Assembly (NCBI RefSeq): GCF_001194135.2
Contig: NC_068981.1
Span: 124,667,953-124,731,952, forward strand
Reading direction: 5' to 3'
Origin: Octopus bimaculoides
Lineage: Eukaryota
DNA length: 64,000 nt
The position numbers and the translations under genes are program-made. Below the pieces are notes generated by a model. It ran no database searches. It was not told the DNA's origin and was given only the letters and a program-made list of their open reading frames with translations. Every line of letters starts with the position of its first letter. Positions within the stretch are counted from its first letter, which is position 1. Of this stretch, positions 3,961 through 36,685 are shown one piece after another.

Positions 3961-4027
<67 letters not shown>

Positions 4028-4144
4028 CTTAGCCAAACCCACACAAGTACATAAAAAACACACACACAAACTAACATAGCACATAGTTGCATGTATGAAA
4101 TCATACACATAAATGTCACCAACATACGTAGGATCGTCTGCATC

Positions 4145-4152
4145 TATTTAAA
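4145..4152 (+). promoter_or_regulatory. TATA-like box (TATTTAAA) upstream of the EF-hand gene
   Basis: Lies about 120 nt upstream of the ATG and about 35 nt upstream of a putative 5'UTR donor at 4187. Motif match only. Confidence 0.35.
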
Positions 4153-4270
4153 GAGTTGACAACTGTGACACTGTTACTTTATCTAGGTAGAGTTCTATCT
4201 GATCGTATCGGCCAACACATAGGTGCTAATATTTCTTTCTTGACAACAGAAAAAATAAAAAGTGATAAAC

Positions 4271-4381
4271 ATGAGTGGATTTGGATCTATTGACAAAACC
4301 GGAGACGGACTGAGCTTGGATGAATTTGTCGAATATTTGAAAGAGAAATATGGCGTGAAAATTTCAAAAGATTTAGCTAGA
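4271..4381 (+). CDS. EF-hand Ca2+-binding protein, coding exon 1 of 3 (MSGFGSIDKTGDGLSLDEFVEYLKEKYGVKISKDLAR)
   Basis: ATG at 4271 with an in-frame TAA just upstream (4256-4258). 37 codons contain the EF-hand-like FxxIDKTGDG-LSLDEF and end at a consensus donor AGA|GTAAGT (4382), phase 0. Confidence 0.85.
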
Positions 4382-5325
4382 GTAAGTTTAATTATTTTTC
4401 TTTTTTCCTCGTTTTAAATACTAACACTTACGAGACTCTAGCACGCAAACACATTGAGATGTGTGTTTTTGTTGTTGCTGAAATTGTTGCTGTCCTAATT
4501 GATTAACAGCCTAAGTCAACCTTGATCTAATACACCTGTGACTAAAGGCGTTCCGCTTGTGATTACGCAGTCTTTTTGCATCGTGTCTAAGACCGCATTA
4601 GCTAATGCATTTTTCATTTCATATAAAGATTTAGTTTGCTACTTCTAGCAAATACACTTTGACTACCATATTCACAAATACGCAAGCATACTGTGGATAT
4701 ATGTAATTCGTATTAGTACGTATGTGTGCGTGATCAGCATATTTCTTTTCCAATCAAATTCCGATACAATCGGAAAATTATTTGTAGAAAATTTCATTAA
4801 AAAATACCCAGTTTTCTGAAAGTTATGAAGAAACAAAGCTGACTCGTGTAAATATTCTGAACTCCCCTCCCCACCCACGGAAGCAAAACGTTTTCACAAC
4901 AAAATTCCAATGCAATCGGAATCTACACCATTTGGATTATAATTATAGAAAACTTCATTTAAGAAATAATATTTTTCTGGAAGTTAGAGTAAACAAGATT
5001 TGTGGTGGCAGACTTGTGAGGGTATTCTAACTTATGAAATTTTCTACAGATACCTTTTAGATAGTGTGCATTTCCATTATATCGGAATTTAATCTGAAAA
5101 ATAAAATTGTTTGGCACGCATACTGACATACATCACAATGTTTTTCGGAAATTTCAAGTCTCATTTTCTAGATGCGTGTGTTGTGCGTCAGTATGTGTAC
5201 AAACCCAGTATTTTTTATGTTTTTCTTTTTCATACGTTAGGGCAGTAATGTATTTACAGGAGGTTAATTATATGGCCGGTCGTATAATTAATTTCCTATT
5301 TTATATATATATATATATATGCGTA

Positions 5326-5599
5326 TAAGAAGGGATGATCACTAAGTGGACATCCGATATGCTAGAAAAAGTTCATCTACGATCTAACAACAAAGAAAAG
5401 AATGTTCTCCAGAAAAAAACTCAGCAAACACCAGAGCATAAGCGACCAAGACGAATGAAAATATACAAAATAAAGAGTTAATGGCGAAACCCGGTCCAAG
5501 ATTTATTCTTTATTTTGTATATTTTCATTTGTCTTGCCCGCTTATGTTCTGGTGTTTGCTGAATTTTTTTCTGGAGAACATTCTTTTCTTTGTTGTTAG
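5326..5599. mobile_element. Fold-back/MITE-like element with about 100-bp near-perfect inverted arms; right end in the gap
   Basis: About 5377-5475 is the reverse complement of about 5503-5599, with a loop of about 25-30 nt. Confidence 0.65.
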
Positions 5600-6501
5600 N
5601 NNNNNNNNNNNNNNNNNNNNNNNNNNNNNNNNNNNNNNNNNNNNNNNNNNNNNNNNNNNNNNNNNNNNNNNNNNNNNNNNNNNNNNNNNNNNNNNNNNNN
5701 NNNNNNNNNNNNNNNNNNNNNNNNNNNNNNNNNNNNNNNNNNNNNNNNNNNNNNNNNNNNNNNNNNNNNNNNNNNNNNNNNNNNNNNNNNNNNNNNNNNN
5801 NNNNNNNNNNNNNNNNNNNNNNNNNNNNNNNNNNNNNNNNNNNNNNNNNNNNNNNNNNNNNNNNNNNNNNNNNNNNNNNNNNNNNNNNNNNNNNNNNNNN
5901 NNNNNNNNNNNNNNNNNNNNNNNNNNNNNNNNNNNNNNNNNNNNNNNNNNNNNNNNNNNNNNNNNNNNNNNNNNNNNNNNNNNNNNNNNNNNNNNNNNNN
6001 NNNNNNNNNNNNNNNNNNNNNNNNNNNNNNNNNNNNNNNNNNNNNNNNNNNNNNNNNNNNNNNNNNNNNNNNNNNNNNNNNNNNNNNNNNNNNNNNNNNN
6101 NNNNNNNNNNNNNNNNNNNNNNNNNNNNNNNNNNNNNNNNNNNNNNNNNNNNNNNNNNNNNNNNNNNNNNNNNNNNNNNNNNNNNNNNNNNNNNNNNNNN
6201 NNNNNNNNNNNNNNNNNNNNNNNNNNNNNNNNNNNNNNNNNNNNNNNNNNNNNNNNNNNNNNNNNNNNNNNNNNNNNNNNNNNNNNNNNNNNNNNNNNNN
6301 NNNNNNNNNNNNNNNNNNNNNNNNNNNNNNNNNNNNNNNNNNNNNNNNNNNNNNNNNNNNNNNNNNNNNNNNNNNNNNNNNNNNNNTATATATATGGGAG
6401 AATATACGAAAAAACAACAACAGACGAGGACAGGTGGTGTAAATAACAAAAGGATGTATTAGTATGACGCTCGGGAATACGGAAAGTCTTATATATATAT
6501 T

Positions 6502-6816
6502 TAAGAGGAATCTACTCATGGGATCCCTTACGCTAGAAAGAACTGCTAGGTTCTAGAACCACATAAATGAGAGGCATGGAATTGATTGCCTCGTGTTTAT
6601 ATACTTTAGTCTGAGGTATCCCTGTTGAAAACGACTTCACCTAGCAAATTATCTTATTTGCTAAACAAAAGTCAGAAAACAATTGGTCCAGGAGAAGAGA
6701 TGGTAAAAGTTTTTATTTTTCATTTCGTTCCTTTCGGGATTTTATCCTTAATTTTGTGGTTCTAGAACCTACCAGTTCTTTCTAGCGTAAGGGATCCTAT
6801 GAGTAGATTCCTCTTA
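6502..6816. mobile_element. MITE, about 315 bp, TIRs of about 70 bp, TA (or TTAA-like) target
   Basis: TAAGAGGAATCTACTCATGGGATCCCTTACGCTAGAAAGAACTG...CAGTTCTTTCTAGCGTAAGGGATCCTATGAGTAGATTCCTCTTA. Confidence 0.8.
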
Positions 6817-6938
6817 TATATTTGAATATACACTGTACCTTATGAATAGTTCATAGTCTTTGGACTACGTTAGGCCACTTGGAAGTGAAAATTTTTATTA
6901 ATTTCCATTTCTCTTTGATATGATTAAGTATATATATA

Positions 6939-8148
6939 TGTTAGGGACGACCGTGCGAACTCATAAAGGAGTAATGGTGACGAATGGACAAACAGAGGAC
7001 TCCTTTTATTTAAACGTGTCACACGGTCGAACATACAAATATAGATATCAATGGATGATATACATGATATGTTATGCGACGATAACATAGATGACCAGTA
7101 ATGAAAGACCACAACCGTATTAGATGAATAACAGAGATATTTATTGTAGTGTTAAAGATGTATGTCTGTGTGAGAGTGTGAATGCGACATATAAGAACAT
7201 AATCAAAGACAGGCCGTCATACAAAGAAAAGTGTGTATGTGAGTGATACATGTGTGTATGAGTGTTTACAGCAGATAGAAAGAAAGTCAANNNNNNNNNN
7301 NNNNNNNNNNNNNNNNNNNNNNNNNNNNNNNNNNNNNNNNNNNNNNNNNNNNNNNNNNNNNNNNNNNNNNNNNNNNNNNNNNNNNNNNNNNNNNNNNNNN
7401 NNNNNNNNNNNNNNNNNNNNNNNNNNNNNNNNNNNNNNNNNNNNNNNNNNNNNNNNNNNNNNNNNNNNNNNNNNNNNNNNNNNNNNNNNNNNNNNNNNNN
7501 NNNNNNNNNNNNNNNNNNNNNNNNNNNNNNNNNNNNNNNNNNNNNNNNNNNNNNNNNNNNNNNNNNNNNNNNNNNNNNNNNNNNNNNNNNNNNNNNNNNN
7601 NNNNNNNNNNNNNNNNNNNNNNNNNNNNNNNNNNNNNNNNNNNNNNNNNNNNNNNNNNNNNNNNNNNNNNNNNNNNNNNNNNNNNNNNNNNNNNNNNNNN
7701 NNNNNNNNNNNNNNNNNNNNNNNNNNNNNNNNNNNNNNNNNNNNNNNNNNNNNNNNNNNNNNNNNNNNNNNCATCGTGGCTGGACGAAGCTGCTGAAGTG
7801 GTCGCTGGAACTGCTGCTGCTGTCGTGTGGTACACGGAACAGTTCTCAAAGAGAAACTGGACCGAGACGAATTATTGGGTATGAGTTAAAGCTATTTATA
7901 ACAAACTATGGGCTCCCGAAGGCTTCAGAATTTTACTCTATCACGTGACCTTATTAGGGGCCGTGATTGGTCAGTTTGCGTTCTGGCGGGAACGGTTCGA
8001 AGAAGTTGCCGATTCGAATAATGATCAGTCACGTGATGTCAAGGAATGGGTTCTCTACTACGCTCGCATTTATTTATATTTAAATGAGAAGATTGTATGT
8101 AATGGCGATAGTAGTTTGTATCTAATGGCGGGAGGTAGTTTCACTACA
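6939..8148 (-). mobile_element. Solo-LTR-like element, copy 2 (TGTAGTGAAAC...GTCCCTAACA)
   Basis: TG...CA termini with TATA(TA) on both flanks (6935-6938, 8149-8152). Internal N gap at 7291-7771. No TIR and no ORF. Confidence 0.75.
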
Positions 8149-8606
8149 TATATATCAAAGTTAAAAAAGCACACACAACAAACAGAAATCGTCAAAACTT
8201 AACAAGCACGAAAAAGACGATAGCACAACAACGGCAAACAGGACAAAACAAGATACACAGATCATTCACAGTCAGTTACTTCTTCATCCGAAAACATGAA
8301 ATGTCCACGTGGTTTCACCCAATCTTCTCTTATACTACTCGAAACCAGTTGGGCCAAGGGCTAAAGCTGAATACATTAATCCCCTGAGCAAGGCAAGCGA
8401 ATGTACATATACAAACACAAGGAAATAACAAACAGAAAGGGTCTTTCGACTATCGGACGAACGTAGCATAAGAAATAGAATTATACGTATACAGTGGACA
8501 AAAGCCTTTCGGCTATACAACAAATATAAAAACAAAACAAACAGGATCTTCCGACTATCAGACGGTGTAAGGAAAAAGGAAATGGAAAAAGGTAGATAGA
8601 TAGATA

Positions 8607-9010
8607 TGTAGTGAAACTACCTATCGCCATTAGATACAAAACTGCTATCGCCATTCTTCTCATTTAAATATAAACAAGCGCGGGCGTAGCGGAAAACATC
8701 AACCTTGTCATCACGTGACTGATCATTATTCGAATCGGCAACTTCTTCGAACCGTTCCCGCCAGAACGCAAACTGACCAATCACAGCCCTTAATAAGGTC
8801 ACGTGATAGTGTTTTTCTACTACCGTCTTGGAGCCCCCTGAATGCTTTAAATAGAGCAACTCATACCCAGTAAAAAGGTCTCGGTTCAGTTTCTCTTTGA
8901 GATCTGTTCCGTGTACCACACGACAGCAGCAGCAACAATCAGTCAGCGACCACTTCAACAGCTTCATCCAGCCAACGATTACCACCGCCGTCGCCACATC
9001 AGCAACACGA
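8607..9010 (+). mobile_element. Solo-LTR-like element, copy 3 (3'-truncated), head-to-head with copy 2
   Basis: Starts TGTAGTGAAACTACC and is the inverted copy of about 7775-8148. The ORF track shows the same peptide (AVIGQFAFWRERFEEVADSNNDQSRD) on opposite strands. Confidence 0.75.
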
Positions 9011-9104
9011 GACTACGACCTAACTGCACCACCTCCTCGTTAGATAAACTTTCTCAATAACGTCAACCTTTATTACTTTTCCTCTGTGTGTGTGTGTGTG
9101 TGTG

Positions 9105-9420
9105 TGTGGTCATGAACGACCATCGCATTGCAGCTTGAAAGTTACTTTCCGCAGGTTAGGTGGTTTATGGAAGAGCGGCAGTCGTCATGCCATGCATAAC
9201 AAACCTCCCCACTGCACGCCACCGACGTTATCCAAAAGAAAGGCAAAGGCCAAAACAGTTTGGCACCAGTGGCGTCGCAACTCATTTCTACAGTTGAGTG
9301 AACTGGAGCAACGTGGAATAAAGTTTCTTGCTCAAGAGCACAACACACAGCCCGATCCGGGAATCAAACTCACAACCTCATGATTGTGAACCCAACACTC
9401 TAACGACTGAGGCATGCAAG
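9105..9420 (-). mobile_element. SINE family D (tRNA head). Other copies at 26640-26975(-) and 52078-52441(-).
   Basis: Shared TTGCTCAAGAACACAACACACAGCCC / GAACTGGAGCAACG segments; the 52078 copy has a 9-bp TSD GGTAACTAA. Confidence 0.85.
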
Positions 9421-10299
9421 CAATAACGACTTACCCAACCTATGCCTACCTTTTATGTGGGAAGGGTCGTTACTTCCTTCTTAAATAAATCAAAGGACCA
9501 CATCTTACTCAAAAGCTTTGTTTTGTTCGACTTGGTTTTTTTGTTAGATGCCTTTTGTAATAAGAACTACTTTATAGGGTGTAGTGAGTCCATTTTATTA
9601 TGACACTGGTGTTACAGCCGTTGTCACATCTTTGACATGAATGAAGTTTTTTCTCAACTCTATACCTAATATAGTAAACTGGGTGCGTTTTGTTTGGAGA
9701 TCAGATTTTTACCACGTTATACCATATTTTCCTGGCATCCCTCATCGACAGTAATACATACAAACATCCGTCCATCCATTCATCCATCCATACATACATA
9801 CATACATACATACATACATACATACAGACAGACATACAAATATACATACGTACATATAAACATACAGACATACATACATTGACAGACAGACAGGTACGAA
9901 CATATATTCATACATTCTTGAATGATTGTTCACAAGGATAAATCTTACTCTCATAAAATAAAGTAAATGATGGCACATGTACCACACAAAAACCACAAAA
10001 TCACCAGAATGAAAGGCTCCATTTATGGGCATGCAATCAGGCAGCTAACACATCATACCACCAATGTAATACAAAAATTTCAATTTAATTATGAAAGTTG
10101 TCAACTGCACGACTCAAACTGTTACACTTGACATACATGTAGGGCACTTTCTCGTTAGTTGACAATGCACTTAGAACAAGGATGCATTGCATCTTGTTAC
10201 ATATAATACGTTCAAATAATATTAGATACCAAAACCGTTAGCTAACACTACTACAATTTTATATAGAATTCTACAGAAAATTAGAATTGCTATTGAAGC

Positions 10300-11440
10300 T
10301 TTACTAGTAGCAAAATAAAAGCCAAAATTCAGCACAAATACGTTATGTAAAATAAATCATGAAGTCTGCCATGATATAGCCGTTCTATAATCCGAAAATC
10401 CGTTTAAGATTTCATCAGTTGTAACAGTAGTTCTATGATCGCTTGCAACTAACTGAAAAATGCATAAAGAACATGCCATTATTTCAAACAATTTATTCTG
10501 ATGATGATACCAGAAAGATTATGAAATGCTAATGGGACAGTAGATTTGTGAATGCTATTGTCCAAAACTAAACATAGCGGACTTATAAGGAAATATATTT
10601 TAAAAATCCTTAATAAAATATAGCTGCATTCCGCGGATCACATACACACATACACACACAAACATACATGCACACATGCACACACACACATACACACACA
10701 CAAACATATACAAACATACACACACACACACACATACTCTTATAATTGATGTGTGTGTGTGTGTGTGTCTGTGTGTGTGTGTGTGTGTGAGTATATATAA
10801 TATGCATAATAAAATGAAACAACAGTTCAATAACCCACCTACAGGAACTAGCAAGCATATGCTTAAAAATACCAACAGAGGAGACATAAACCCCAATGAA
10901 AAGTACCAAATACGGCTAAATCATGTTAGTAAAAATGATCGTGATATAGCTAACACGGTAACAACGTTGGAAAATGAAGTCACAACTGCCATATATACAA
11001 ACAAGTATAAATGCTCATGCAGAGAAAAACCAAAATGCCCATTGATGAACCTCTGTATGAGTACAAATCTTGTATATAAATGTACCGTGCACTCAAGGCG
11101 GTGTGTATGTTTACATTAGGCAAACGGCTGATTCATTCAAGAATCGTTATCACAACCATGTTTCCAGCTACAAGAAAATCAATATGAGACATTCAACATC
11201 TTTGGCCGATTTTGTGTGGCGACTTAAGGAAGACAAAATCAAGTATAACATAGCTTAGTCCATAGTAAGGCACGCAAAACCATATAATATCATTTCCAGG
11301 AGATGCCGACTCTGCTCCGAGGAATCCCTGTCTATTCGATGGACTAATAAGAAGATTATTAATACATTTTCTGAAGGACTTTCAAGATTCTTACATGCAT
11401 ATAAATGCACTTTCGCACAATGAATGAATTTTAGCAACTG
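10300..11440 (+). mobile_element. Penelope-like retroelement relic: RT C-terminal linker and GIY-YIG endonuclease
   Basis: CSCREKPKCPLMNLCMSTNLVYKCTV / VYIRQTADSFKNRYHNHVSSY...HSTSLADFVWRLKEDKIKYNI / KPYN...CRLC. Contains frameshifts and stops and is interrupted by a (CA)/(TG) microsatellite. Confidence 0.8.
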
Positions 11441-12396
11441 TTAATATATTTCACCTTAAGGTATGGATGAATTAAATTTAGCTTTAACTTCTCCGTTTTT
11501 CTAAACACCAAGTAGCTAGTTAACTCGCTATCTGAACATATGTGCGCCAAACCACGCGTGTGCGTTGATTACATCTTCATGGAGGCTTGTATGGCAGAGT
11601 GTACATACGTTAACGATTATTCTTAATACTTTTTTTGTTGCACTGTGCTCGTTTCATTTTGCATCTGTTATCTTATTATTGATCTTCTATATAAATGAAG
11701 CTATATCCTTTAATTTGCAGCTTTTCTTTGCAAGAACTGAAAAGATACATTGCGGGACCGTTATTTTGACGAGTTATATCTATTTATCACCCGAAGAGAT
11801 ACATCTGCACCGTCGGATGCTCTTGAACCAGTTGTTAAGTATCCCACCCGTGAGGGATCAACGCTCGATGGTGGCTGTGTGGCTGTGTGCTTTCCAACTA
11901 CGTGGTTCTGGGTTCAGTCCCACTGCGTGACAGCTTGTTCAAGTGTTTTCTACTATAGTCTCGGGCCGACCAAAGCTTTGTGTGTGGATTTGGTAAACAG
12001 AAACTGAAAGAAGCCCGTATTATGTGTGTGTGTGTGTTTCTCCCCCATTTCTGCTTCACAACCAGTGTTGATGTGTTTACGTCCCCCGTAACTTAGTGGT
12101 TTGGCAAAAGAGATCAATAGAATAAGTACCAGGCTTTAAATAATAAATACTGGGGCTGATTCTAATGACTGAAACAAGTAAAAAATAAAGGTAAAAAAAA
12201 CTAAACCACCAAATCGTATGTCTTTGTCTCTGTTGCCAGAAAGTAAGGTAGACAGTAGTCATGAATCAGTTTTTAACTCTACAAATTTTGGTGGCAGCCT
12301 GCATTAATGTATCGCTCATATATTTATATATTATATAGTTGAATGTAAATAAATATAACTTCACCATAATTTCTTTCTTTCTTTTTCTAATTGTAG

Positions 12397-12488
12397 GGTG
12401 TTTTTAATGATATCGACTGCAGGCGATCTGATGACGATCGTATAGTATGGGAAGAATGGGAGGAATTTCTCAAGTCAAAACCTTTTTC
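12397..12488 (+). CDS. EF-hand Ca2+-binding protein, coding exon 2 of 3 (GVFNDIDCRRSDDDRIVWEEWEEFLKSKPF+tc)
   Basis: Long pyrimidine tract plus TTGTAG acceptor; 92 nt; donor TC|GTAAGT; phase 0 to phase 2 fits both neighbouring exons; EF-hand-like VFNDID...IVWEEWEEFL. Confidence 0.85.
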
Positions 12489-12987
12489 GTAAGTATATAG
12501 AAGACTGTATTCCATAAAACCTAAAATTCTAAAAACAAAAGGATACACCAGGCACATGCATCACAACCATATGTGCACGACATGGTGATTTCATATCAAG
12601 ATAAACAGCACATGACCTTGCAAGTGAGGCCCAGTTAGAATTTTCTTCAGATCGAGTAGCCCATCCCACTCAAAAGGTTTCTGAATAAAGGTTGTTTAAG
12701 AATGTTGAAAGAAGCACCCTTGTTTTCAAAGGTGAATTAGCCAAACCCCCAAAAATTCCTTTCAACACATTTCCCACTATTGCTCATGATCAGAGAAGCA
12801 TACATCGTCAGCCACTAAGGGATATGCTCAACTGGTTATGGTCAAACAACTGACAAGCAAATCTGTGGTATTGGGGATAATATTTGCTGTAACCCATTTT
12901 TTATACCAACACAAAACAATGTGCATGATAACACTTCCAATCAGTTAAGATCAGAAGCCATGAGAGCCACTGCATGGTACTGCATCA

Positions 12988-13013
12988 GTATTATTATAAT
13001 TATTATTATTATT

Positions 13014-13096
<83 letters not shown>

Positions 13097-13119
13097 TATT
13101 ATTATTATTATTATTATTA
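12988..13119. repeat. Compound (ATT)n(CAT)n(ATT)n microsatellite
   Basis: Direct observation. Confidence 0.95.
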
Positions 13120-13329
13120 GGGCGACGAACTGGCAAAATCGTTAGCCCACTGGTATTTCATCTGCTGCTACGTTCTGAATTCAAATTCCGCTGAGGTCGA
13201 ATTTGCCTTTCATCCTTTTGGAGTCGATAAATTAAGTACCGTTGAAACACTGGGATCGATGTAATTGACTAGTCCTCTCCCCCCAAATTGCTGCCCTTGT
13301 GGCAAGATTTGAAACCATTATTATTATTA

Positions 13330-13363
<34 letters not shown>

Positions 13364-13646
13364 CATGATGATGATGAAAGCTCTCAGCTTATTTTGCTGG
13401 GTACGATGGAAAGTGTTAGCTGTCCACAGCTAGCAAACTAAGGTAACACTCGTTTACTGGTCATACTTCAAGAACCCTGCGAAGAATTCTTGCAGTTGCA
13501 AGCAATGCTGATTTTTGTAGGTATTCTACCTTTACATTTGTACCAGATACTGTATTGTTGCAAGAAATCAGTAACTTTGTTATAAACTTAACAATTTCAC
13601 ATTTGCTTGATTTTTTTCTCATGCCTTCTTATATTTCTGATTTCAG

Positions 13647-13869
13647 TGACGTGCAAAAGGATGATCTTATAAAGGTGTTTGATGATGCTGACGCGGATGG
13701 CAATGGAAAACTCTGTTCGGCGGAATTATCGAACGGCTTATCTAAGAAGGATTATAGTAATGATGATATAGCCAAATTTATTACTGACTACGATACTGAT
13801 AGTGATAAACTTATAAGTAGGACGGAGTGGGTCAAAATGGTTGAGGATTATATAAAACAGAAAGCGTAA
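13647..13869 (+). CDS. EF-hand Ca2+-binding protein, coding exon 3 of 3 (two canonical-length EF hands, stop TAA). Spliced CDS is 426 nt / 141 aa.
   Basis: TTTCAG acceptor in phase 2 completes Ser68. Loops DADGNGKLCSAE and DTDSDKLISRTE. This is the 3' part of the 13555..13869 ORF in the track. Confidence 0.92.
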
Positions 13870-14049
13870 GCTACAGGTCGCCTTACGTTATGTCAAAATA
13901 CATCTCAAGGCTACTTACTGTTTACTTTGTTGTAGCGTTTTCTTAAGCATTTTGTTGTTATTTTTATCTTTTTTCATATGTTCCATTTTACCTCATTATT
14001 TTTACCTTATGTTAGATTTGTTATTCTATTCCATTTGCGACAAGGTTTC

Positions 14050-14055
14050 AATAAA
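14050..14055 (+). terminator. Polyadenylation signal AATAAA of the EF-hand gene (candidate)
   Basis: AATAAA about 180 nt after the stop, in a T-rich, repeat-free 3'UTR-like segment. Confidence 0.5.
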
Positions 14056-15499
14056 TTACCAGTGTACTTCGTTTATGAGTGCCGTGGGTACTCACAGTTT
14101 ATAATAGCATAGAAATACACTCAATTCAATATTTACGATGTTAAACAACTCAGCCGTACGTCATAGGACATTATTAATCTATTGGGAACTCAGCATGTCG
14201 ATTAAAAAGAAAAGACATTGACGATTTCCACACTCATCTTTTCCATCTTCTGTAACATGATGCATAAGCACTAATACGAGATAAATCAATAGCTTTCAAA
14301 AATCTACAAATACATACATACATACATACATACATACATACAAACATACATACATACATACATGCCTGTGTATATGTGAGTACACTTTGTTTTTTACTAT
14401 TTTTTCCATTTAAAAGGAGTTTTTTTATGCAACGGAATAGAATGAATAATTTGCTACCATAGAACAAAATAACATAAATTCGCTTTGTTACTGATCAGAA
14501 TAATAAATATGGTTTAATAAATAAAGAAATAGAATATCTTGAATGATAATAACACAATAACTTCAAGTATATTTTATTTTCCAAAATGTAAGAAACTCAT
14601 GTGGAAATATATATAAAAAATTTTTTAATCTTTTTTGCTATTATATTTTTGTTTTTATTTTATCCTTGCTTTAAACATTTTGGAAACTTTTGTCTGCATG
14701 TCACAGTGTGTGTGCACGTACGCATGTGTGTGTGTGTGTGTGTGTATTCTGCGTGTATTCTGCGTACTTTGAACAATGAATGGGTGAAAAAATACAAGGC
14801 TCTTTTCGCTTTCACACACTAAATCCGACATTTTTGAAAAGAGGTTATTCGTTGTAAAATAGTGCCTGTGAAGAAAGAAAAATAAGTCGCTGAGTTTGAC
14901 GCATGCAGTAGTTTTGAACCACATTGATATTTTCGGCCTCCTATCAGTAAACTGGTTCATTTCGGCGCGAAGTTGCTTTTTTTTATCAACTCGATATAGA
15001 CTCCAACTATGCAGCAAATGTATTTGACGGGGAAAATATCCTGGCACCATGTGACCCTATTTCTGCTTCCACAACATCTGCCACTTGTCATATAAATAAT
15101 GCTATATTCTGTGTTGTGATTGTCACAAAAAAAAACAAACATCATTCGAATACAGTACTCCCACACAAAACAGGTGATAAATGAAAGTCAAAAATATCGT
15201 TGTAAAGATCTATGAGTGTATAAGTAGAGAGAAAAAGAAAAAAAAAAGAATTCGTTTTGTATGATTATATTGTCGCAGGCATGGCCATAAGCACCGGCAT
15301 GGCTACATGGTAAGAACGTTACTTCTCAACCACATGGTTCCAGATTGCGTATTGTTCAGTTAGGACATATATGGTTCAGTAGTTGCTGATGTTACAAGCA
15401 TAACAGTTGTTGAATGATAAAACCAATAGGTCTTTTCTAGGAAAGATGATTCCAAACGATTTAAGTCAATAGCCATTTTCTCCAATTACTTTTATAACG

Positions 15500-19349: not shown

Positions 19350-22222
19350 TTCACAGGTGCCAGATGTCGGGCCGTCGGCAACTAAACCGACAACCTCATA
19401 GAGCTTGCTCTGTGAGGAGGGTGTTTTTATTTTTTCTTGCTATTTGGTTACCCTGCAGGATTAATTACAAGACCTGTCAAAGGGCGGATGAACTCTGAAA
19501 AGCCAACAGCCATCCAAATAAGCAATTGTCTTTACAAGTTATGCTGCTTATTAAGCCCTTAAACTATAAAGACAACAGCGATAAATAACAACTTCGCTGC
19601 CTTGAAGCAATAACCACTTAAGGGAAAGACTTTGGGAGTAAACCCCGAGGATAAATCAGGAACCATGTATCGCATGCGCAACTACCGATCTCCCACGAAA
19701 ATCTGTTCAGGCCTGTGCCCTGGAAAGGACACTCCAGCGCCGTCTAACCGCAGTGGTAAAACACGGAAAGCAGCAGTCTACCGGTTTTAAGCCTGCACAT
19801 AATTGGTATAAGAACAAGGCGCCAGGGTCTGCTTTCGACAGAGGAAGAGGCCACTGTGTCTCATTGGACAGATACCGCCTGCCTCAAGTTGGGCAGCCCC
19901 CAGCCAGTTAGGTGCTGTTCTGTCGCAACCCACCTATTCCACTGAGTGCGTGGCGCTTAGGAGAACCAACATCTCGAACCGTGAGCTGTAAACATTGCAC
20001 TATGAAAAATGAACAAGTAAACAAGCAACGCAACGCAAAAAAACAGCATTCAGACTCGGATGTTAGAACATAAGAAACATGACAACTTGTCTGTTAGAGG
20101 ACCTTCGAAAAATCAGCAACACACGCAAGACAGCAGCGATCAACAACGAACTGCTACGACTACGAGTGGACATTGCAGTACTCCAGGAACGAGAATCCTA
20201 GACCCGGGGACCCTTCGTGAAAGAGATATCTTTTTCTGGCTGTGAAGAACTCTCTACTAAAATTGGTAGAACTCAACAGTAACGGTTCAGAGCGGACACA
20301 CTCATTTCTATTGTACACTTCTGATGGGCCTATCAACCTTATCAGTGCTTATGCAGAGGGGAAGTTATCAAGGACAAAATAGAGCAGCTGGAGAGATGGG
20401 TGTAACATTGTTCCGAACTCTACGCCAAAGAAAAAAAAAATCATCTTAGACAGTGCGCTAGACACTGTAGAGCACCTACCTGTAATGGAGGAGCTGGAAG
20501 CACTACCAAATGCTGAGAACTGAGCAGAGCCATTGATGGCTTGCCCACTAGAAAAGCACCAGGCTTGGATGGCATCCCATCAGAATTCATTAGATATGCA
20601 AGGAGAGTTCTACTTAGCCACTTGCTCAAGCTACTGTGTCAGTACTGGGAGGAGTGATCAGTACCGCAAGACATGAAAGACTGCAACAATGTCACCCTAT
20701 ATAAGAACGAACGAGACAAAAGCAACTTAATAGCTACCGAGGCATCTCGTTGTTAAGTATCGTTGGGAAAATCTTTGCCCACTTGACCCTGAATAGGCTA
20801 CAGAAAATCGCTGAGAGGGTATACCCCGAATCTCAGTGTGGTTTCAGAGCAATACACTCCACCATCAACGTGATCTTCTCTTTCCGACAGCTGCAAAAAA
20901 AATGTGCTGAGAGCAAAGACAACCACTCTTTATGACCTCCATCGACCTCACAAAGGCTTCTGACCTAGTCAGTCGAGACGGCCTGTTCAAAATCCTTGCC
21001 AAGATTGGCTGCTCTCCAAGACTTCTCAGGATTGTTCAATCATTTCACACGGACATGAAAGCATCGTTCAATTTGGTGGCTCTTTTTCAGAGGCATTCAA
21101 CATACGCAGCAGCATGAAACAGGGCTGTGTACTTGTCCCCAACCTATTTGGCATTTTCGTTGCAGTCATGCTGAAACATACAGTTGGGACATCAATTGAT
21201 GGTGCTTACGTCCACACCAGGTCAAAAGGAGAACTGTTTAGTCTGTTGAAGCTGAAAGCAATTCGAAAGTGCTCCAGATACTCGTCAGAGAAACGCTGTT
21301 CGCAGACGATGCAGCACTGACAGCACTTTCTGAAGAGCAAATGCAGCACTTCGTGGACAAACTTTCAAAGTCCTGCAAGGAATTCAGCCTTACTATCAGT
21401 TTGAAGAAGACCCAAATAATGGGTCAAAGTATCAAGCACGCCCCCACAAGTTGGAGGTAGTCCATGAATTCACCTATCTCGGCTCTGCCATCGCTGATGA
21501 CCTTTCCCTGGACCCTGAGATCAACAGGCAATTCGGTCAAGCATTCTCCACATTTGCCAGGCTCACGAAGAGAGTCGAGAACAAAATACTGGCTGCAAAC
21601 ACCAAAATTGTTGTCTATAAGGCGTGCGTCCTTAGTACGCTACTTTATGGTAGTGAGTGGCGTCCCAACGTCTTTCACACACATCTTGGGCATCAAGTGG
21701 ACCGATCACATCACCAACACCGAAGTCCTCAACTAATCCAAGACACAAAATACACATCTTGCTCCAGCAGCGTCGTTTGCGCTGGCTCGGTCATGTTCAT
21801 TGCATGCCAGACGGAAGGATCCCAAAAGACCTCCTGTATGGGGAATTGGCTACCGGCACAAGAGCACGGGGACAATCTCATCTTCGTTTCAAAGATGTCT
21901 GTAAGAGAGACATGAAGTCGCTTGATCTGGACGTCCTGAGATGGGAGGAAGTTGCAAATGATCTCTCACACTGGAGGCAAATACTGCGAAAGGGAATGAA
22001 GAGAGCGTAAGAAAAACAGGTACTCGCCATCAGAGAAAAGCGCACTCGACGGAAGGAAAAATCAGCAGCACTGGCAGAGAGCTCCTTCGAATGCACTCGC
22101 TGTATGCGTGACTGCCGCTCCCGTGTGGATTTGTAACAGCCACAATAGACGCTGCAGCACCATCAGCAGCTGACACGATTTCTTTGGGTGCAGATCTATG
22201 GCGACGGATGCCTACTACTACA
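19350..22222 (+). mobile_element. Near full-length but decayed RTE (BovB-like) LINE: APE endonuclease, RT and C-terminal region
   Basis: RKTAAINNELLRLRVDIAVLQE; QCGFRA..STI..IFS.RQLQ.KC; IDLTKA.DLVSR; KQGCVL.P.LF; LFADDAAL (about 21299); EVVHEFTYLGS; QRRLRWLGHV..MPDGRIPKDLLYGEL; C-terminal CxxC; CGGATGCC(TAC)n tail. Many frameshifts. Confidence 0.92.
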
Positions 22223-27365: not shown

Positions 27366-28169
27366 TCTTTTCGGCAAAGTTTAATTTGCCTATACAGATA
27401 AGGTATGGATGAATAAAAACATTTCAAAGAGGGATTTACATGTCTTTTTCTCCAAATATAATTACAATAAAACAACACTCTTTTTAGACAATGCATCAAG
27501 CTACTTAATGAACTTAAATGAGTTTTCTTATAACTTGAGAGTAGAATATATCCTTAATTTCTTCGCTCCAGCCAGTGAATTGAAGTGAGATAGCTAACTT
27601 CAAAGCATATCGAAAACTTTCAACAACTAATGAACGTTATTGACAAGGAGGTTAAACCAGATTAGCAACTTCTGGATTAACTTCAAGATAATAGATGCTG
27701 CTGATAACGGAGTCATGGGATGAAGTGGAGCCCTCCTCAAGCAGAAAGTCTACACCAAATTCGGAAATATATTGTAATGATGAACGGATTGAAGACGTCA
27801 GAAAATAGTGTGGTTCAGTTTATTTGTGCTTCATAAAGTTAATCCAGTGAGGAGTTAATGCTGTTAGAACAAGCTGAGAATACAGAAATTGCACTAACTC
27901 CATTTAAATTTACTTCAAAGAAAATCGTTAGAGTTGTGATACATAGATCTGCAAGATTTTGCTAACAACTCTAATCGAGATCAGAAAATTTACAAGGAGT
28001 CCAATTCCTACACTGAGCTATACAGAGATGATACGCCTGCCCTTGTTATCGGTATCGACGATGACACAGTAATCAACATCTTTTGTGGTAAGAATGTATT
28101 ATACTATTCTTCTTCTTCATTCTTTAGTATTTTTCACTTCGAATATTTTACATATATATCTCAAATTGT

Positions 28170-29895
28170 TGGATCAGGTAATGAAAGTCACGGAGAGGGT
28201 CATAGCCCAACTAATTAGGAAGAGAGTTAGTTTAGATGAGATGCAGTTTTGGTTTGTGCCAAGGAGAAGCACCATTGATGCTATATTTCTGGTAAGACAA
28301 CTGCAGGAGAAATTCCTAGCCAAAGATAAACCTGTGTACTTGGTTTTTGTTGACATGGAGAAAGCCTTCGACAGGGTGCCCCGATTCCTTATCTGGTGGT
28401 CAATGAGGAAACTAGGGATAGATGAGTGGTTGGTGAGAGCTGCACAAGCCATATACAGGGATGCTGTCAGTAAGGTGATGGCTAGCAATGAGTATAGTGA
28501 AGAATTCCAGGTAGAAGTAAGGGTTCACCAAGGATCAGTCCTCAGCCTCCTCTTATTCATCAGAGTCCTTCAGGCAATAGCAAGAGAATTCAAGACAGGC
28601 TGCCCTGGGAGCTCCTCTATGCTGATGATCTTGTTCTAATAGCTGAGTCACTACCAGAACTAGAGAAGATTTTCAGATGTGGAAGCAAGGTCTAGAATCG
28701 AAGGACCTTAGAGTCAACCTAGCAAAAACCAAACTTAGTAAGTAGGAAGGCAGACAAATCACATATCTCTTTAGGTACATGGCCCTGCTCGATCTGAAGA
28801 AAAAGCGTAGGTAGAAACTCCATAAGATTACCCTGTGTAAGGTATGGACACATAGGAGGTGCAGCAATATCAAAGAAAAGTTAACTGGTAAGATAGTTTT
28901 TGTGAGTGGCAGATGCACAGGTGCAATAAACACCGAAGATGTACAGAAAACAGATTCCATCACATGTCAGGGTAAGAAACTAGGATTAGTTGATAGCTTC
29001 CGTTACCTAGGTGACCAAGTCAGTAGCGGGAGTGGATGCTCTGATAGCATAGCTGCTAGAATAACAATAGCCTAGACAAAGTTCGGAGAGCTCCTACCTC
29101 TGCTAGTAACAAAGGGTCTCTCACTCAGAGTGAAACAGACTATATGATGAATGAGTGCAAACAGCCATGCTACACGGCAGTGAATCATGGGTTGTAACTG
29201 CTGAAGAAATGCGGGGGCTTGAAAGAAATGAAGCTAGTATTCTCCGCTGAGTGTGCATACACGACAGAGTGTACGCGTCCTGACAGAAAAGTTGGACATA
29301 AGAAGCATCAAATGTTGTGTGCAAGAGAGACGACTGCGCTGGTATGGCCATGTGTTACATATGGATGAGGACAGCTGCGTGAAGAAGTGTTACACCCTAA
29401 CAGTGGAGGGAATCTGTGAAAGAGGTAGACTCAGGAAGACATAGGACGAGGTAGTGAAGCATGGCTTTTGAACGTTGGGCCTCACAGAGGCAATGACAAG
29501 CGATCGAGACCTTTGGAGATTTGCTGTGCTTGAGAAGACCCGACAAGCCAAGTGAGATCGTAGCTGTGGCCGATGCCAGTGTCGCATAACCGGCCCATTT
29601 AAAAGCACCCTTCAATCGGCGGGCAATATGCCGTGCTTGTGAAGACCTGTTGAACCAAGTGAAATCGTAGTCGTGGCCGATGCCAGTGCCACCTGAATGG
29701 CACCCTTCCGGTGGCATGTAAAAAGCACCCAATACACTCTCGGAGTGGTTGGCGTTAGGAAGGGCATCCAGTTGTAGAAATTTTGCCAAATCAGATTGGA
29801 GCCTGGTGCAACCTCCCGGCCTACCAGTCCTCAGTCAAACCGTCCAACCCATGCCAGCATGGAAAGCGGACGTTAAACGATGATGATGATCATCA
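28170..29895 (+). mobile_element. 5'-truncated RTE LINE (second family) with complete 3'UTR and (ATG)n tail
   Basis: STIDAIFLVRQLQEK...FVDMEKAFDRVPR; HQGSVLS.LLF; LYADDL (about 28615); FRYLG; ERRLRWYGHV; ends GGAAAGCGGACGTTAAACGATGATGAT. Confidence 0.92.
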
Positions 29896-34601: not shown

Positions 34602-34828
34602 CATGTGTGTATGAGTGTTTGTGTACGTGTCTCAAGTGTGTGTGTGTGTGTGTGTTTGTACACATATCTGTTGTGCTTTAAAAATCTAAATTTATTCAAT
34701 ACAATAACACCAACCTCCCTATCCCCGCCCCAAACCCAATCTCTTTGTTTCTTTCTCCCTTATATAGTTAGAGAATAATTTTTAAGTTAAAACAGATTAT
34801 CACAGAATTCCTAAATCAGAAGCCAGGG

Positions 34829-34927
34829 TTAGAGGGAGCTGTTGCCCGCTAAGTCGTTTATTGTCAATTGCGCAAATCCTACCAGGGATTTATCATCAGG
34901 TGCTTCAGTGGGTCCGAATCCGGAATT
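34829..34927 (-). CDS. OXSR1: SPAK/OSR1 kinase last coding exon (NSGFGPTEAPDDKSLVGFAQLTINDLAGNSSL*)
   Basis: CTTCTTTGTCTTTGTAG acceptor, phase 0, stop TAA at 34831-34829. Matches OSR1 ASGVEGSDIPDDGKLIGFAQLSIS. Invertebrates typically carry one SPAK/OSR1 (fray) gene, so the symbol is approximate. Confidence 0.95.
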   Translation of the reverse strand, partial: NSGFGPTEAPDDKSLVGFAQLTINDLAGNSSL

Positions 34928-35084
34928 CTACAAAGACAAAGAAGGAAAGAAAAAAAACATATAGAAGTACAAACAATTAGTAACAGATAGACAGCTGAAG
35001 CACTTGCATACAAGAATTTCTCATAATATAGATATACAAACGTAGACTATTAAATACATACAGAAACATACACACACTCATACA

Positions 35085-35704: not shown

Positions 35705-35740
35705 CAGGTCTGTACATGAAAATTTCAGAATGCATCTTAC

Positions 35741-35805
35741 CAAAGCAAAAGTAATGTTTTTATTTTCAGTCGGGTTATCCAACACTTTCTGCAAATTAGC
35801 AGCAA
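35741..35805 (-). CDS. OXSR1: SPAK/OSR1 kinase exon ([21 protein letters not shown])
   Basis: CTCCTCTATTTCCAG acceptor, TG|GTAAGA donor, 65 nt, phase 1 to 0. Matches OSR1 AANLQKIVEEPQSNRSVTFKL. Confidence 0.95.
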
Positions 35806-36685
35806 CTGGAAATAGAGGAGCAAATTAATATTATTATTTATTTGTATCGTATTGTCCTGAATTCTATTACGCTGTAGAAATTATGATTGTTCAACTAGAG
35901 TCCAAGAACGAAAGAGAGAAAAGAATTCTCACATTTTAAAACAAATAAATCTTAGATTATGTAAAGTTTAAAAGTTTGGATAAGTTTGAAAGCATGGGAA
36001 AAGTGGAATCTGTCATTTCAAGACTGACTCAAGACTAACTCAGCATCTTTGAAAAAAAAAAAAATAGAAAAATGATTTATGAAGGGTTAGTCCCTACACT
36101 AAAAAACATCAGTTTCATCTTTTCCCCATCACCAGTTAACTTATCCTGGATAGGACTTTAAACTGCATCAGGGAGTGGGATCCTTGCTAAAGATATCCAG
36201 GGTCTGATGGGTGCAGTACCATCTCTTAGCCACGATTGTCCCCAGGTTTATTCTGACTCAAAATAGTAGCACCTGTCAAGGTCCAAGCTATAGGTTTAAA
36301 TAGCATCTAACCACCCAAGCCAAGGTGCATCAAAATTACAAAATGCAGCAAAGTGGATGTGGACTATTTCAGCAAATGAACTTCTTGAGTCAAAGGCAAA
36401 CATTACCAGATGTTGAAAAGATAAACAGATAACAAACTGTCAACAACCAGGATCAACCAGTTCAGTTAGCAAACTATTACTATCACCTGCAGTCATTGCT
36501 TGCACAGGTAAGATACTTTAGCTAATGAAAGACCTATGTGACTAAAACATAAGCCAAACATCCAAGCAACATCATTCAACCAGGACATCTAGTATAGAAG
36601 AGTTGCATTGGTCTGGTCAAGTCATAAGTGATGATGATGCTGAACTCATCAAAACTCATGAACTTCACTGAATAATGTTTGCTAG

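Follow-up and report, generated by a model that had tools for sequence, protein, structure and literature searches.

Few proteins are as conserved as calmodulin, and the EF-hand sensors of its class are textbook cases of extreme conservation. Among related proteins, several S100s evolve quickly, sea-urchin Spec and 15-kDa-type proteins are lineage-restricted, abundant members of the troponin-C superfamily with four EF-hands, and some penta-EF-hand proteins have an 11-residue EF1 loop. A different mode of evolution is established for the genes of snake-venom phospholipase A2 (PLA2), conopeptides and abalone lysin, in which coding exons diverge far more than introns and untranslated regions (UTRs), all three codon positions are hit evenly by substitutions, and silent sites are raised too. 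The gene analyzed here resides in a 64-kb stretch of the Octopus bimaculoides genome (NC_068981.1, positions 124,667,953 to 124,731,952; the window hereafter, all coordinates being on the + strand), at the locus GCA_001194135.2 CM046601.1:124.67 Mb. In contrast with the conservation typical of calmodulin-class sensors, it encodes an octopod-only member of the calmodulin fold, which keeps two EF-hand loops of odd length and is specified by one of the most abundant messenger RNAs (mRNAs) in two samples. About half of the residues of its C-lobe are replaced between species, with neighbouring non-coding DNA differing by 4-8%.

Divergence of coding and non-coding sequences

The transcribed region spans from ~4192 to ~14557 and yields an mRNA of ~1.19 kb. 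Its components are as follows:

4192..4270, + strand, 5' UTR, defined by clusters of read starts and by transcript contigs L005 (from 4192) and L006 (from 4188)
4271..4381, + strand, coding exon 1, 111 nucleotides (nt), residues 1-37, EF1 loop at 4292-4324
4382..12396, + strand, intron 1, 8,015 nt, phase 0, including both assembly gaps and repeats
12397..12488, + strand, coding exon 2, 92 nt, residues 38-67 and two letters of codon 68, EF2 loop at 12415-12456
12489..13646, + strand, intron 2, 1,158 nt, GT..AG, phase 2, repeat-rich
13647..13869, + strand, coding exon 3, 223 nt, residues 68-141 and stop, EF3 loop at 13690-13725, EF4 loop at 13792-13827
13870..14557, + strand, 3' UTR, AATAAA signals from 14502; the transcript contig ends at 14557, with adapter sequence beyond

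The O. sinensis locus (L009) is collinear with the window over more than 20 kb, and was compared by global alignments around each exon; its coding sequence (CDS) relies on the RefSeq model, together with the closeness of the latter to the O. vulgaris model. The identity between O. bimaculoides and O. sinensis is:

exon 1 (CDS part): exon 78%, flanking non-coding 91-93%
exon 2: exon 74%, flanking non-coding 92-94%
exon 3 (CDS part): exon 60%, flanking non-coding 92-93%

No indels are found in the exons, and exon 3 is the most divergent between species. Identity changes sharply at the ATG, at the splice sites and at the stop codon (in 40-nt windows, 0.53 at 13847 and 0.97 at 13887), and the UTR parts of exons 1 and 3 remain conserved. 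As a whole, 137 of 426 coding letters differ vs. 302 of 3,855 non-coding letters (Fisher p = 1e-40). A similar result is obtained with P0002, a transcript from an octopus of unidentified species, in which UTRs are 96-97%, the CDS 82% and exon 3 74% identical to those of O. bimaculoides (p = 2e-12). Coding divergence higher than that of the adjoining introns or UTRs, a mark by which accelerated evolution is recognized, is hence found in two pairs. The rates of nonsynonymous (dN) and synonymous (dS) substitution according to Nei and Gojobori, and the divergence of the non-coding DNA (K), are:

O. bimaculoides vs. O. sinensis: dN 0.39, dS 0.61, non-coding K 0.083
O. bimaculoides vs. P0002: dN 0.21, dS 0.19, non-coding K 0.053

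The local non-coding rate is exceeded 4- to 5-fold by dN, and nonsynonymous differences largely exceed the neutral expectation (104 vs. 27, p = 8e-34; 63 vs. 17.6, p = 2e-18). The dN/dS ratio of the closest pair is 1.11 overall and 1.39 in the C-lobe, the sequences being too few for site models. Differences are evenly distributed over the codon positions (23/28/25), 51 out of 76 are transversions, and no letter is shared in 15 of the 65 replaced codons. Between O. vulgaris and O. sinensis, 16 of the first 100 residues differ.

RNA editing and divergent alleles were considered as a source of variation, and rejected. No divergent allele and no A-to-G editing were detected in exon 3 at a share of at least 2% in the two samples, corresponding to the raw-read runs X23 and X24. 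The sole exon 3 variant at ≥2% share and ≥80% likeness is a single nucleotide polymorphism (C>A at 13865), which changes the last residue, Ala141, to Glu, and is carried by ~50% of the reads in X23 and ~100% in X24.

EF-hands and conservation of the two lobes

The protein is acidic (34 Asp+Glu; pI 4.45; 16 kDa), and contains 2 Met, 3 Trp and 2 Cys residues. Its four EF-hand loops are:

EF1, D8-E18, DKTGDGLSLDE, 11 residues
EF2, D44-E57, DCRRSDDDRIVWEE, 14 residues
EF3, D83-E94, DADGNGKLCSAE, 12 residues
EF4, D117-E128, DTDSDKLISRTE, 12 residues, with Lys at position 6

Loop positions, the Lys residue in EF4 and the Met, Trp and Cys counts had all been noted correctly in an earlier reading of the DNA carried out with no database searches (the sequence-only reading hereafter). 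When aligned to solved EF-hands by HMMER, EF1 lacks one residue, deleted just past the Gly of loop position 6, and the EF2 loop has two inserted residues. Just seven residues precede EF1, and the start Met is common to all relatives. Helix A is nearly missing, the AlphaFold2 (AF2) model showing a three-residue helix before EF1. The C-lobe is well recognized by Pfam profiles, the N-lobe barely so: EF-hand_7 scores 43.4 bits (cut-off 30) over residues 73-133, EF-hand_6 33.4 (25) and EF-hand_1 31.3 (25.4). The protein belongs to the EF-hand superfamily, as indicated by the Pfam pair above the gathering score and by paired loops connected by beta-bridges. In the AF2 model (mean predicted local distance difference test score 73) two lobes, each made up by a pair of EF-hands, are present, and loop beta-bridges are formed at residues 14/53 and 89-90/124-125. 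Calmodulin and plant CML18 are the top Foldseek matches (21-27% identity), and residues 3-133 align to residues 15-145 of calmodulin (E ~1e-6). Full-length similarity and the predicted two-lobe organization assign the protein to the calmodulin-like (CML/CTER) type with four EF-hands.

The two lobes evolve at different pace. In the comparison of O. bimaculoides with O. sinensis the identity is 65% in the N-lobe and 43% in the C-lobe, with P0002 88% and 49%, respectively. By these alignments the N-lobe is the better conserved half, and the C-lobe is hypervariable apart from the Ca2+ ligands. The EF1 loop, DKTGDGL(S/C)LDE, is nearly invariant in Octopus. Residues invariant across all members include D8, G11, G13, L14, V39, F40, I43, D44, R46, D50, W55, E57, W58 and E60; W55, W58 and W129 are conserved. 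The 11-residue EF1 and the 14-residue EF2 loops are found in every full-length family member, and therefore represent an old conserved trait of the family rather than the product of decay. The decayed N-lobe implied by the sequence-only reading does not match these data, the half carrying the odd loops being the most conserved part of the protein. When the canonical 12-residue register of EF2 is counted back from the invariant Glu57, the place of the first Ca2+ ligand is taken by the invariant Arg46, and EF2 is accordingly not expected to bind Ca2+ canonically. In EF4, D1, D/N/S3, D5 and E12 are kept in all members, and almost all other loop positions vary. The cysteines found in the loops, for which a redox-sensitive role had been suggested, are replaced in relatives (S/G/D/A/R at C45; T/N/T/S/D/C at C91); since neither is conserved, the redox idea is unsupported.

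Neither a signal peptide nor a hydrophobic segment was found in the protein sequence. Lacking hydrophobic segments, the protein is not classically secreted, and is predicted to be cytosolic.

Conservation of ligands in a variable context could hint at a high-capacity cytosolic Ca2+ buffer, similar to parvalbumin or to sarcoplasmic Ca2+-binding proteins, in which only the acidic ligands matter and the rest drifts under relaxed constraint. The high abundance of the mRNA, the acidic nature of the protein, the retention of EF4 ligands amid variable positions and dN/dS values of 0.6-1.1 are all in line with this hypothesis. Yet relaxed constraint may raise dN at most to the neutral rate, and dN here exceeds the divergence of the introns and UTRs nearby by a factor of 4-5. 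Moreover, the most conserved part of the protein is the N-lobe, the non-canonical loops of which look poorly suited for buffering. A buffer is thus an unlikely explanation.

Causes of the accelerated evolution

Recurrent positive selection is the simplest explanation of the data, because relaxed constraint cannot lift dN above the neutral rate. As far as sequence comparisons can tell, the gene would represent an uncharacterised octopod family in which selection repeatedly hits an interaction surface, the protein working as a Ca2+-dependent binder or sensor in an arms-race or reproductive setting rather than in housekeeping; we regard this interpretation as probable, though far from certain. 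The C-lobe, chiefly EF4, the ligands of which are kept in every member, would be the Ca2+-binding module. The N-lobe, with its 11-residue EF1 loop, its 14-residue EF2 loop and most of helix A missing, may serve as a conserved, Trp-rich scaffold or target-binding module; Ca2+ binding by this lobe, which carries the invariant Trp55 and Trp58, would be non-canonical or none. Replacement of the protein surface, above all in the C-lobe, would proceed 4-5 times as fast as local neutral change, with Ca2+ ligands and hydrophobic core kept. The partner engaged by the protein would co-evolve with it, in a setting that may be reproductive, or related to host defence or to parasites.

Several observations weigh against selection on the protein as the cause of the divergence, a first set concerning silent sites. 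Synonymous differences are more numerous than expected (32.7 vs. 6.1; 13.3 vs. 4.1), and 6/21 and 5/27 of the 4-fold sites are changed in codons that are otherwise conserved. Raised silent sites are not what selection acting only on the protein would predict, and the high dS values (0.61 and 0.19) keep a mutational explanation alive. According to the latter, the divergence would result from a 'mutator' confined to coding DNA, as proposed for conopeptides, or from repeated gene conversion from unseen diverged paralogs; the presence in Argonauta of a second gene, 29% identical and located 16 kb away, fits conversion. The same oddity at silent sites is known for venom PLA2 and conopeptide genes. 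Identity, however, drops at the start codon within exon 1 and recovers past the stop codon within exon 3, with the untranslated portions of these two exons being 93-97% identical, and both conversion tracts and transcription-linked mutation are disfavoured because neither would respect start and stop limits within exons. In addition, no paralog resides in the 64-kb window, databases hold one such protein per Octopus species, almost no reads of 80-95% likeness are found, and ligand and core positions are spared. Taken together, a mutational origin seems improbable.

Other points on the same side concern the extent of the data and the protein itself. The coding comparison covers three Octopus coding sequences and two Argonauta genes, too few for site models, and the dN/dS ratio is lower than 1 in more distant pairs (0.64 and 0.86). 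The AF2 model is of moderate confidence and includes no ions, and the role assigned to the N-lobe is therefore an inference. Ligand residues of EF3 are kept in 4/5 members, the exception being the Argonauta paralog P0011 (E12->V); counting the G6->L change in P0002, EF3 is degenerate in two members. The C-lobe as a Ca2+ binder, proposed in the sequence-only reading, is supported by the canonical ligands retained in EF4 of every member; the degenerate EF3 of two members is not in keeping with it. Finally, unlike classic fast-evolving secreted proteins, the octopus protein lacks both signal peptide and hydrophobic segment.

This abundant octopod EF-hand protein, devoid of signal peptide, might be locked in an arms race, being an invertebrate functional analogue of the fast-evolving, non-classically released host-defence proteins of the S100/calprotectin type, or a sperm or reproductive Ca2+ protein, a possibility that we advance tentatively and with some doubt. 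If true, this would be a rare case of venom-like, coding-confined evolution in a calmodulin fold of the intracellular type. If selection drives the divergence, the data would point to a new Ca2+-dependent interaction under conflict (reproductive, immune or parasite-related), and the family would show, as a natural experiment, which EF-hand positions may change without loss of the fold. If mutation or conversion does, the gene would be relevant to a long-standing problem, the faster change of silent sites in 'accelerated' genes.

Gene structure, transcription and annotation

Exon borders conform to consensus splice sites (AGA|gtaagt, ttgtag|GGT, TTC|gtaagt, tttcag|TGA), and the spliced CDS, 426 nt in length, translates exactly into the 141 residues, followed by a stop codon, deduced in the sequence-only reading from three exons joined in phases 0 and 2. 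Both junctions are supported by RNA reads. As many as 22,109 reads in X23 and 10,532 in X24 pass from 4381 directly into GTGTTTTTAATGATATCGACTGCAGGCGAT, the start of exon 2, and the loose end of the contig at 12397 carries the last 30 letters of exon 1, mirror evidence of the same join. The 12488/13647 joint (GT..AG) is crossed by 16,704 reads in X23 and 7,795 in X24. The three exons are found joined in L005, in L006 and in one 1,163-nt Logan contig. Five N runs interrupt the window; two of them, 5600-6386 and 7291-7771, fall within intron 1, and no coding letters are affected. Since reads connect exon 1 straight to exon 2, no exon is hidden in these gaps, across which the order of the blocks is the same as in the gap-free O. 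sinensis locus.

Transcription starts mainly at 4192 and 4197. The 5' UTR (4192..4270) has an in-frame stop at 4256 and contains no upstream ATG. A minor share of the transcripts (~2-3% of the exon depth) initiates 5' of the main start, within 4000-4191, and one Logan contig reaches ~150 nt beyond 4150. Read depth is ~13,000-fold on exons vs. ~5- to 12-fold on introns, falling from ~13,000 to ~5 at 4383. The gene accounts for ~1.3% (X23) and ~0.8% (X24) of all reads read, and its mRNA is among the most abundant in these samples. Within intron 2 the region 12980-13410, rich in repeats and including a long ATT/ATC-type run at ~12990-13120, collects RNA reads by the thousand, along with numerous spurious joints that come from other parts of the genome; this region lies outside the transcript.

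The hypothesis that the gene results from erroneous annotation or assembly, or is a pseudogene in decay, might be entertained, as two gaps fall within its range and O. vulgaris is represented by a truncated model of 108 residues. It is refuted by spliced reads, numbering in the tens of thousands, and by the shared gene structure: the frame is intact, exon lengths are the same and indels are missing in O. bimaculoides, O. sinensis and the P0002 transcript, the structure of the Argonauta genes matches, and ligand and core positions are conserved.

The gene had been described as hidden in the sequence-only reading. The protein is however identical to RefSeq XP_014769871.1 (UniProt A0A0L8IFL0), named "15 kDa calcium-binding protein" [Octopus bimaculoides], so that the gene model is already known, and the protein family is uncharacterised. 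No paper mentioning the accessions or using the RefSeq name was found in a literature search. The name seems to reflect weak similarity in the C-lobe. Orthologs bear three different names; O. sinensis P0153 and O. vulgaris P0003 are called "calcium-dependent protein kinase 2". Family proteins (141 residues) lack a kinase domain, Pfam detecting EF-hand families only, and the latter names are mis-annotations. The RefSeq model of P0003 is truncated, counting 108 residues and ending with SFYSTNFD. The names "calcium-dependent protein kinase 2" and "15 kDa calcium-binding protein" currently given to the orthologs mislead annotation. Acceleration confined to the coding DNA, the most unusual feature of the gene and out of reach of the sequence-only reading, is new as far as could be found.

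The octopod family

Relatives were searched for exhaustively with HMMER among 1.84 billion representatives, and with a profile among 5.8 billion clusters. The family members found, with their identity to the query, are:

P0153, O. sinensis, 55%, "calcium-dependent protein kinase 2"
P0003, O. vulgaris, 63%, 108-residue truncated model
P0004, Argonauta hians, 50%, hypothetical protein
P0011, Argonauta hians, 29%, located 16 kb from P0004 on the same strand
P0002, unidentified octopus transcript, 69%, Logan contigs only
P0015, unidentified octopus, 47%, open reading frame (ORF) call confined to exon 3

In the HMMER scan two matches with E ≤1e-32 were followed only by generic EF-hand repeat proteins. 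In both searches relatives were found in octopods only, and no sequence from squids, other molluscs or other animals exceeded generic EF-hand similarity, a result in line with the lineage-specific nature proposed by the sequence-only reading. A profile of the N-lobe alone, run against the 5.8-billion-cluster set, gathered 7 candidates and returned one known member, and is no measure of breadth. Exon lengths, 111(117)/92/223(220), and phases are shared by 4/4 genomic genes from three species.

The gene is probably single-copy in Octopus bimaculoides. By tblastn with P0001, P0011, P0153 and P0015, the three exons are the only matches in the window, which contains no paralog, and no P0011-like copy is found within 50 kb downstream of the gene.

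No characterised ortholog was found. The protein could in principle be the octopus ortholog of calmodulin, troponin C, the squid-type optic-lobe CaBP, the '15 kDa calcium-binding protein' or a CDPK. RefSeq names point to the last two, and the best matches among solved structures are calmodulin, calmodulin-like domains of CDPKs, centrin and troponin C. These matches, however, are 21-34% identical and driven by the C-lobe, orthologs go by three different names and have no kinase domain, and in the exhaustive search matches at 1e-32 are followed directly by EF-hand repeat proteins of generic type. Orthology to any of these proteins is very unlikely.

P0015, which counts 81 residues, had been considered as a 'C-lobe-only' relative, and was rejected. 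It starts with MLYISNF, a translation of the 3' end of intron 2 from polypyrimidine tract to acceptor (in the window YISDF|S; 13630-13869). The ORF call repeats the exon-3-only error made in the ORF track of the window. P0002 sits on Logan contigs L001-L003, derived from runs SRR16213284-6, which are given as Planococcus ficus mealybugs from Mexico (PMC13340311). The octopus mRNA found in these runs is most likely the result of cross-library carry-over of a very abundant transcript.

Overall, the observation made in the sequence-only reading is confirmed, and its interpretation is partly supported.

Neighbouring sequences

No other called genes are found within 10 kb of the locus. In Argonauta hians (L007/L008; BAAFZT010000002.1, ~91.27-91.30 Mb) P0004 and P0011 reside 16 kb apart on the same strand, and are followed, on the opposite strand, by an OSR1_C-type kinase gene. 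Two segments of the window (34725-34940 and 35727-35825), 70-87% conserved in translated comparison with the Argonauta locus near the end of the OSR1-like kinase gene of the latter, are collinear with it. The hypothesis that kinase exons are located at 34.7-35.8 kb was rejected, as both strands of the conserved blocks lack an open frame, and these blocks probably correspond to non-coding or UTR sequences that are conserved and mark shared synteny. Two open frames on the + strand of the window, 20964-22007 and 28073-28636, feature reverse-transcriptase-like motifs (e.g. FVDMEKAFDRVPR) and are retroelement fragments. A copy similar to the 28073-28636 frame is present in the Argonauta locus.

Comparison with known systems

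Some of the families mentioned above differ in organization. CDPKs have a kinase domain, which is missing in the octopus family. Penta-EF-hand proteins (calpain dVI, sorcin, ALG-2) have five hands, the octopus protein four, and none of them is among the Protein Data Bank (PDB) matches listed. Sarcoplasmic Ca2+-binding proteins and calexcitin are compact, single-domain proteins of ~175-190 residues; the octopus protein is 141 residues long, has a two-lobe model, and neither type is among the best PDB matches listed, by sequence or by fold. The best echinoderm match, P0029 from Diadema, covers residues 40-135 at 34% identity, with no full-length orthology to the sea-urchin type, and differs from the octopus protein in having loops of canonical length and a normal first helix.

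More restricted similarities were observed for the N-lobe and for the EF2 loop. Over the whole lobe, the N-lobe profile best matches the EF3-EF4 pair in the N-terminal regulatory domain of SCaMC-1 (SLC25A24), with which the motif (T)ISxxxAxxxxxxID...(V/I)xWxEW is shared. The score is low (E ~0.01), the loops of SCaMC-1 are canonical 12-mers, and the octopus protein has no carrier domain; the resemblance is probably only local. S100 proteins (S100A6, calprotectin S100A8/A9) resemble the octopus protein in having a 14-residue non-canonical loop that pairs with other EF-hands, in being small, acidic and devoid of signal peptide, and in that they can be very abundant. In S100s, however, the 14-residue loop is found in the first hand of a dimeric protein with two EF-hands and ~100 residues, in the octopus family in EF2 of a protein with four hands and 141 residues. 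Matches to the S100A6 profile are weak (E 0.2-0.7), and homology beyond the superfamily is not supported.

Calmodulin and CML proteins are closest in architecture, being made up of ~140-150 residues, acidic, and organized in two lobes of paired EF-hands; they provide the top Foldseek and PDB matches. Identity is nonetheless 21-25% to calmodulin chains (21-27% including CML). Calmodulin sensu stricto has four 12-residue loops, Met-rich pockets and no Trp, whereas the octopus family has loops of 11 (EF1) and 14 (EF2) residues, and the octopus protein 2 Met and 3 conserved Trp. The view of the sequence-only reading that the protein is not calmodulin, and that the 11- and 14-residue loops are real, is hence correct. 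The octopus family is further distinguished because restricted to octopods and evolving extremely fast. In the latter respect the gene can be compared to those of snake-venom PLA2, conopeptides and abalone lysin, the products of which are secreted and act extracellularly, whereas the octopus protein has no signal peptide and an intracellular-type fold. With these accelerated genes it shares the far higher divergence of exons than of introns and UTRs, the even distribution of substitutions over the three codon positions, and the raised silent sites.

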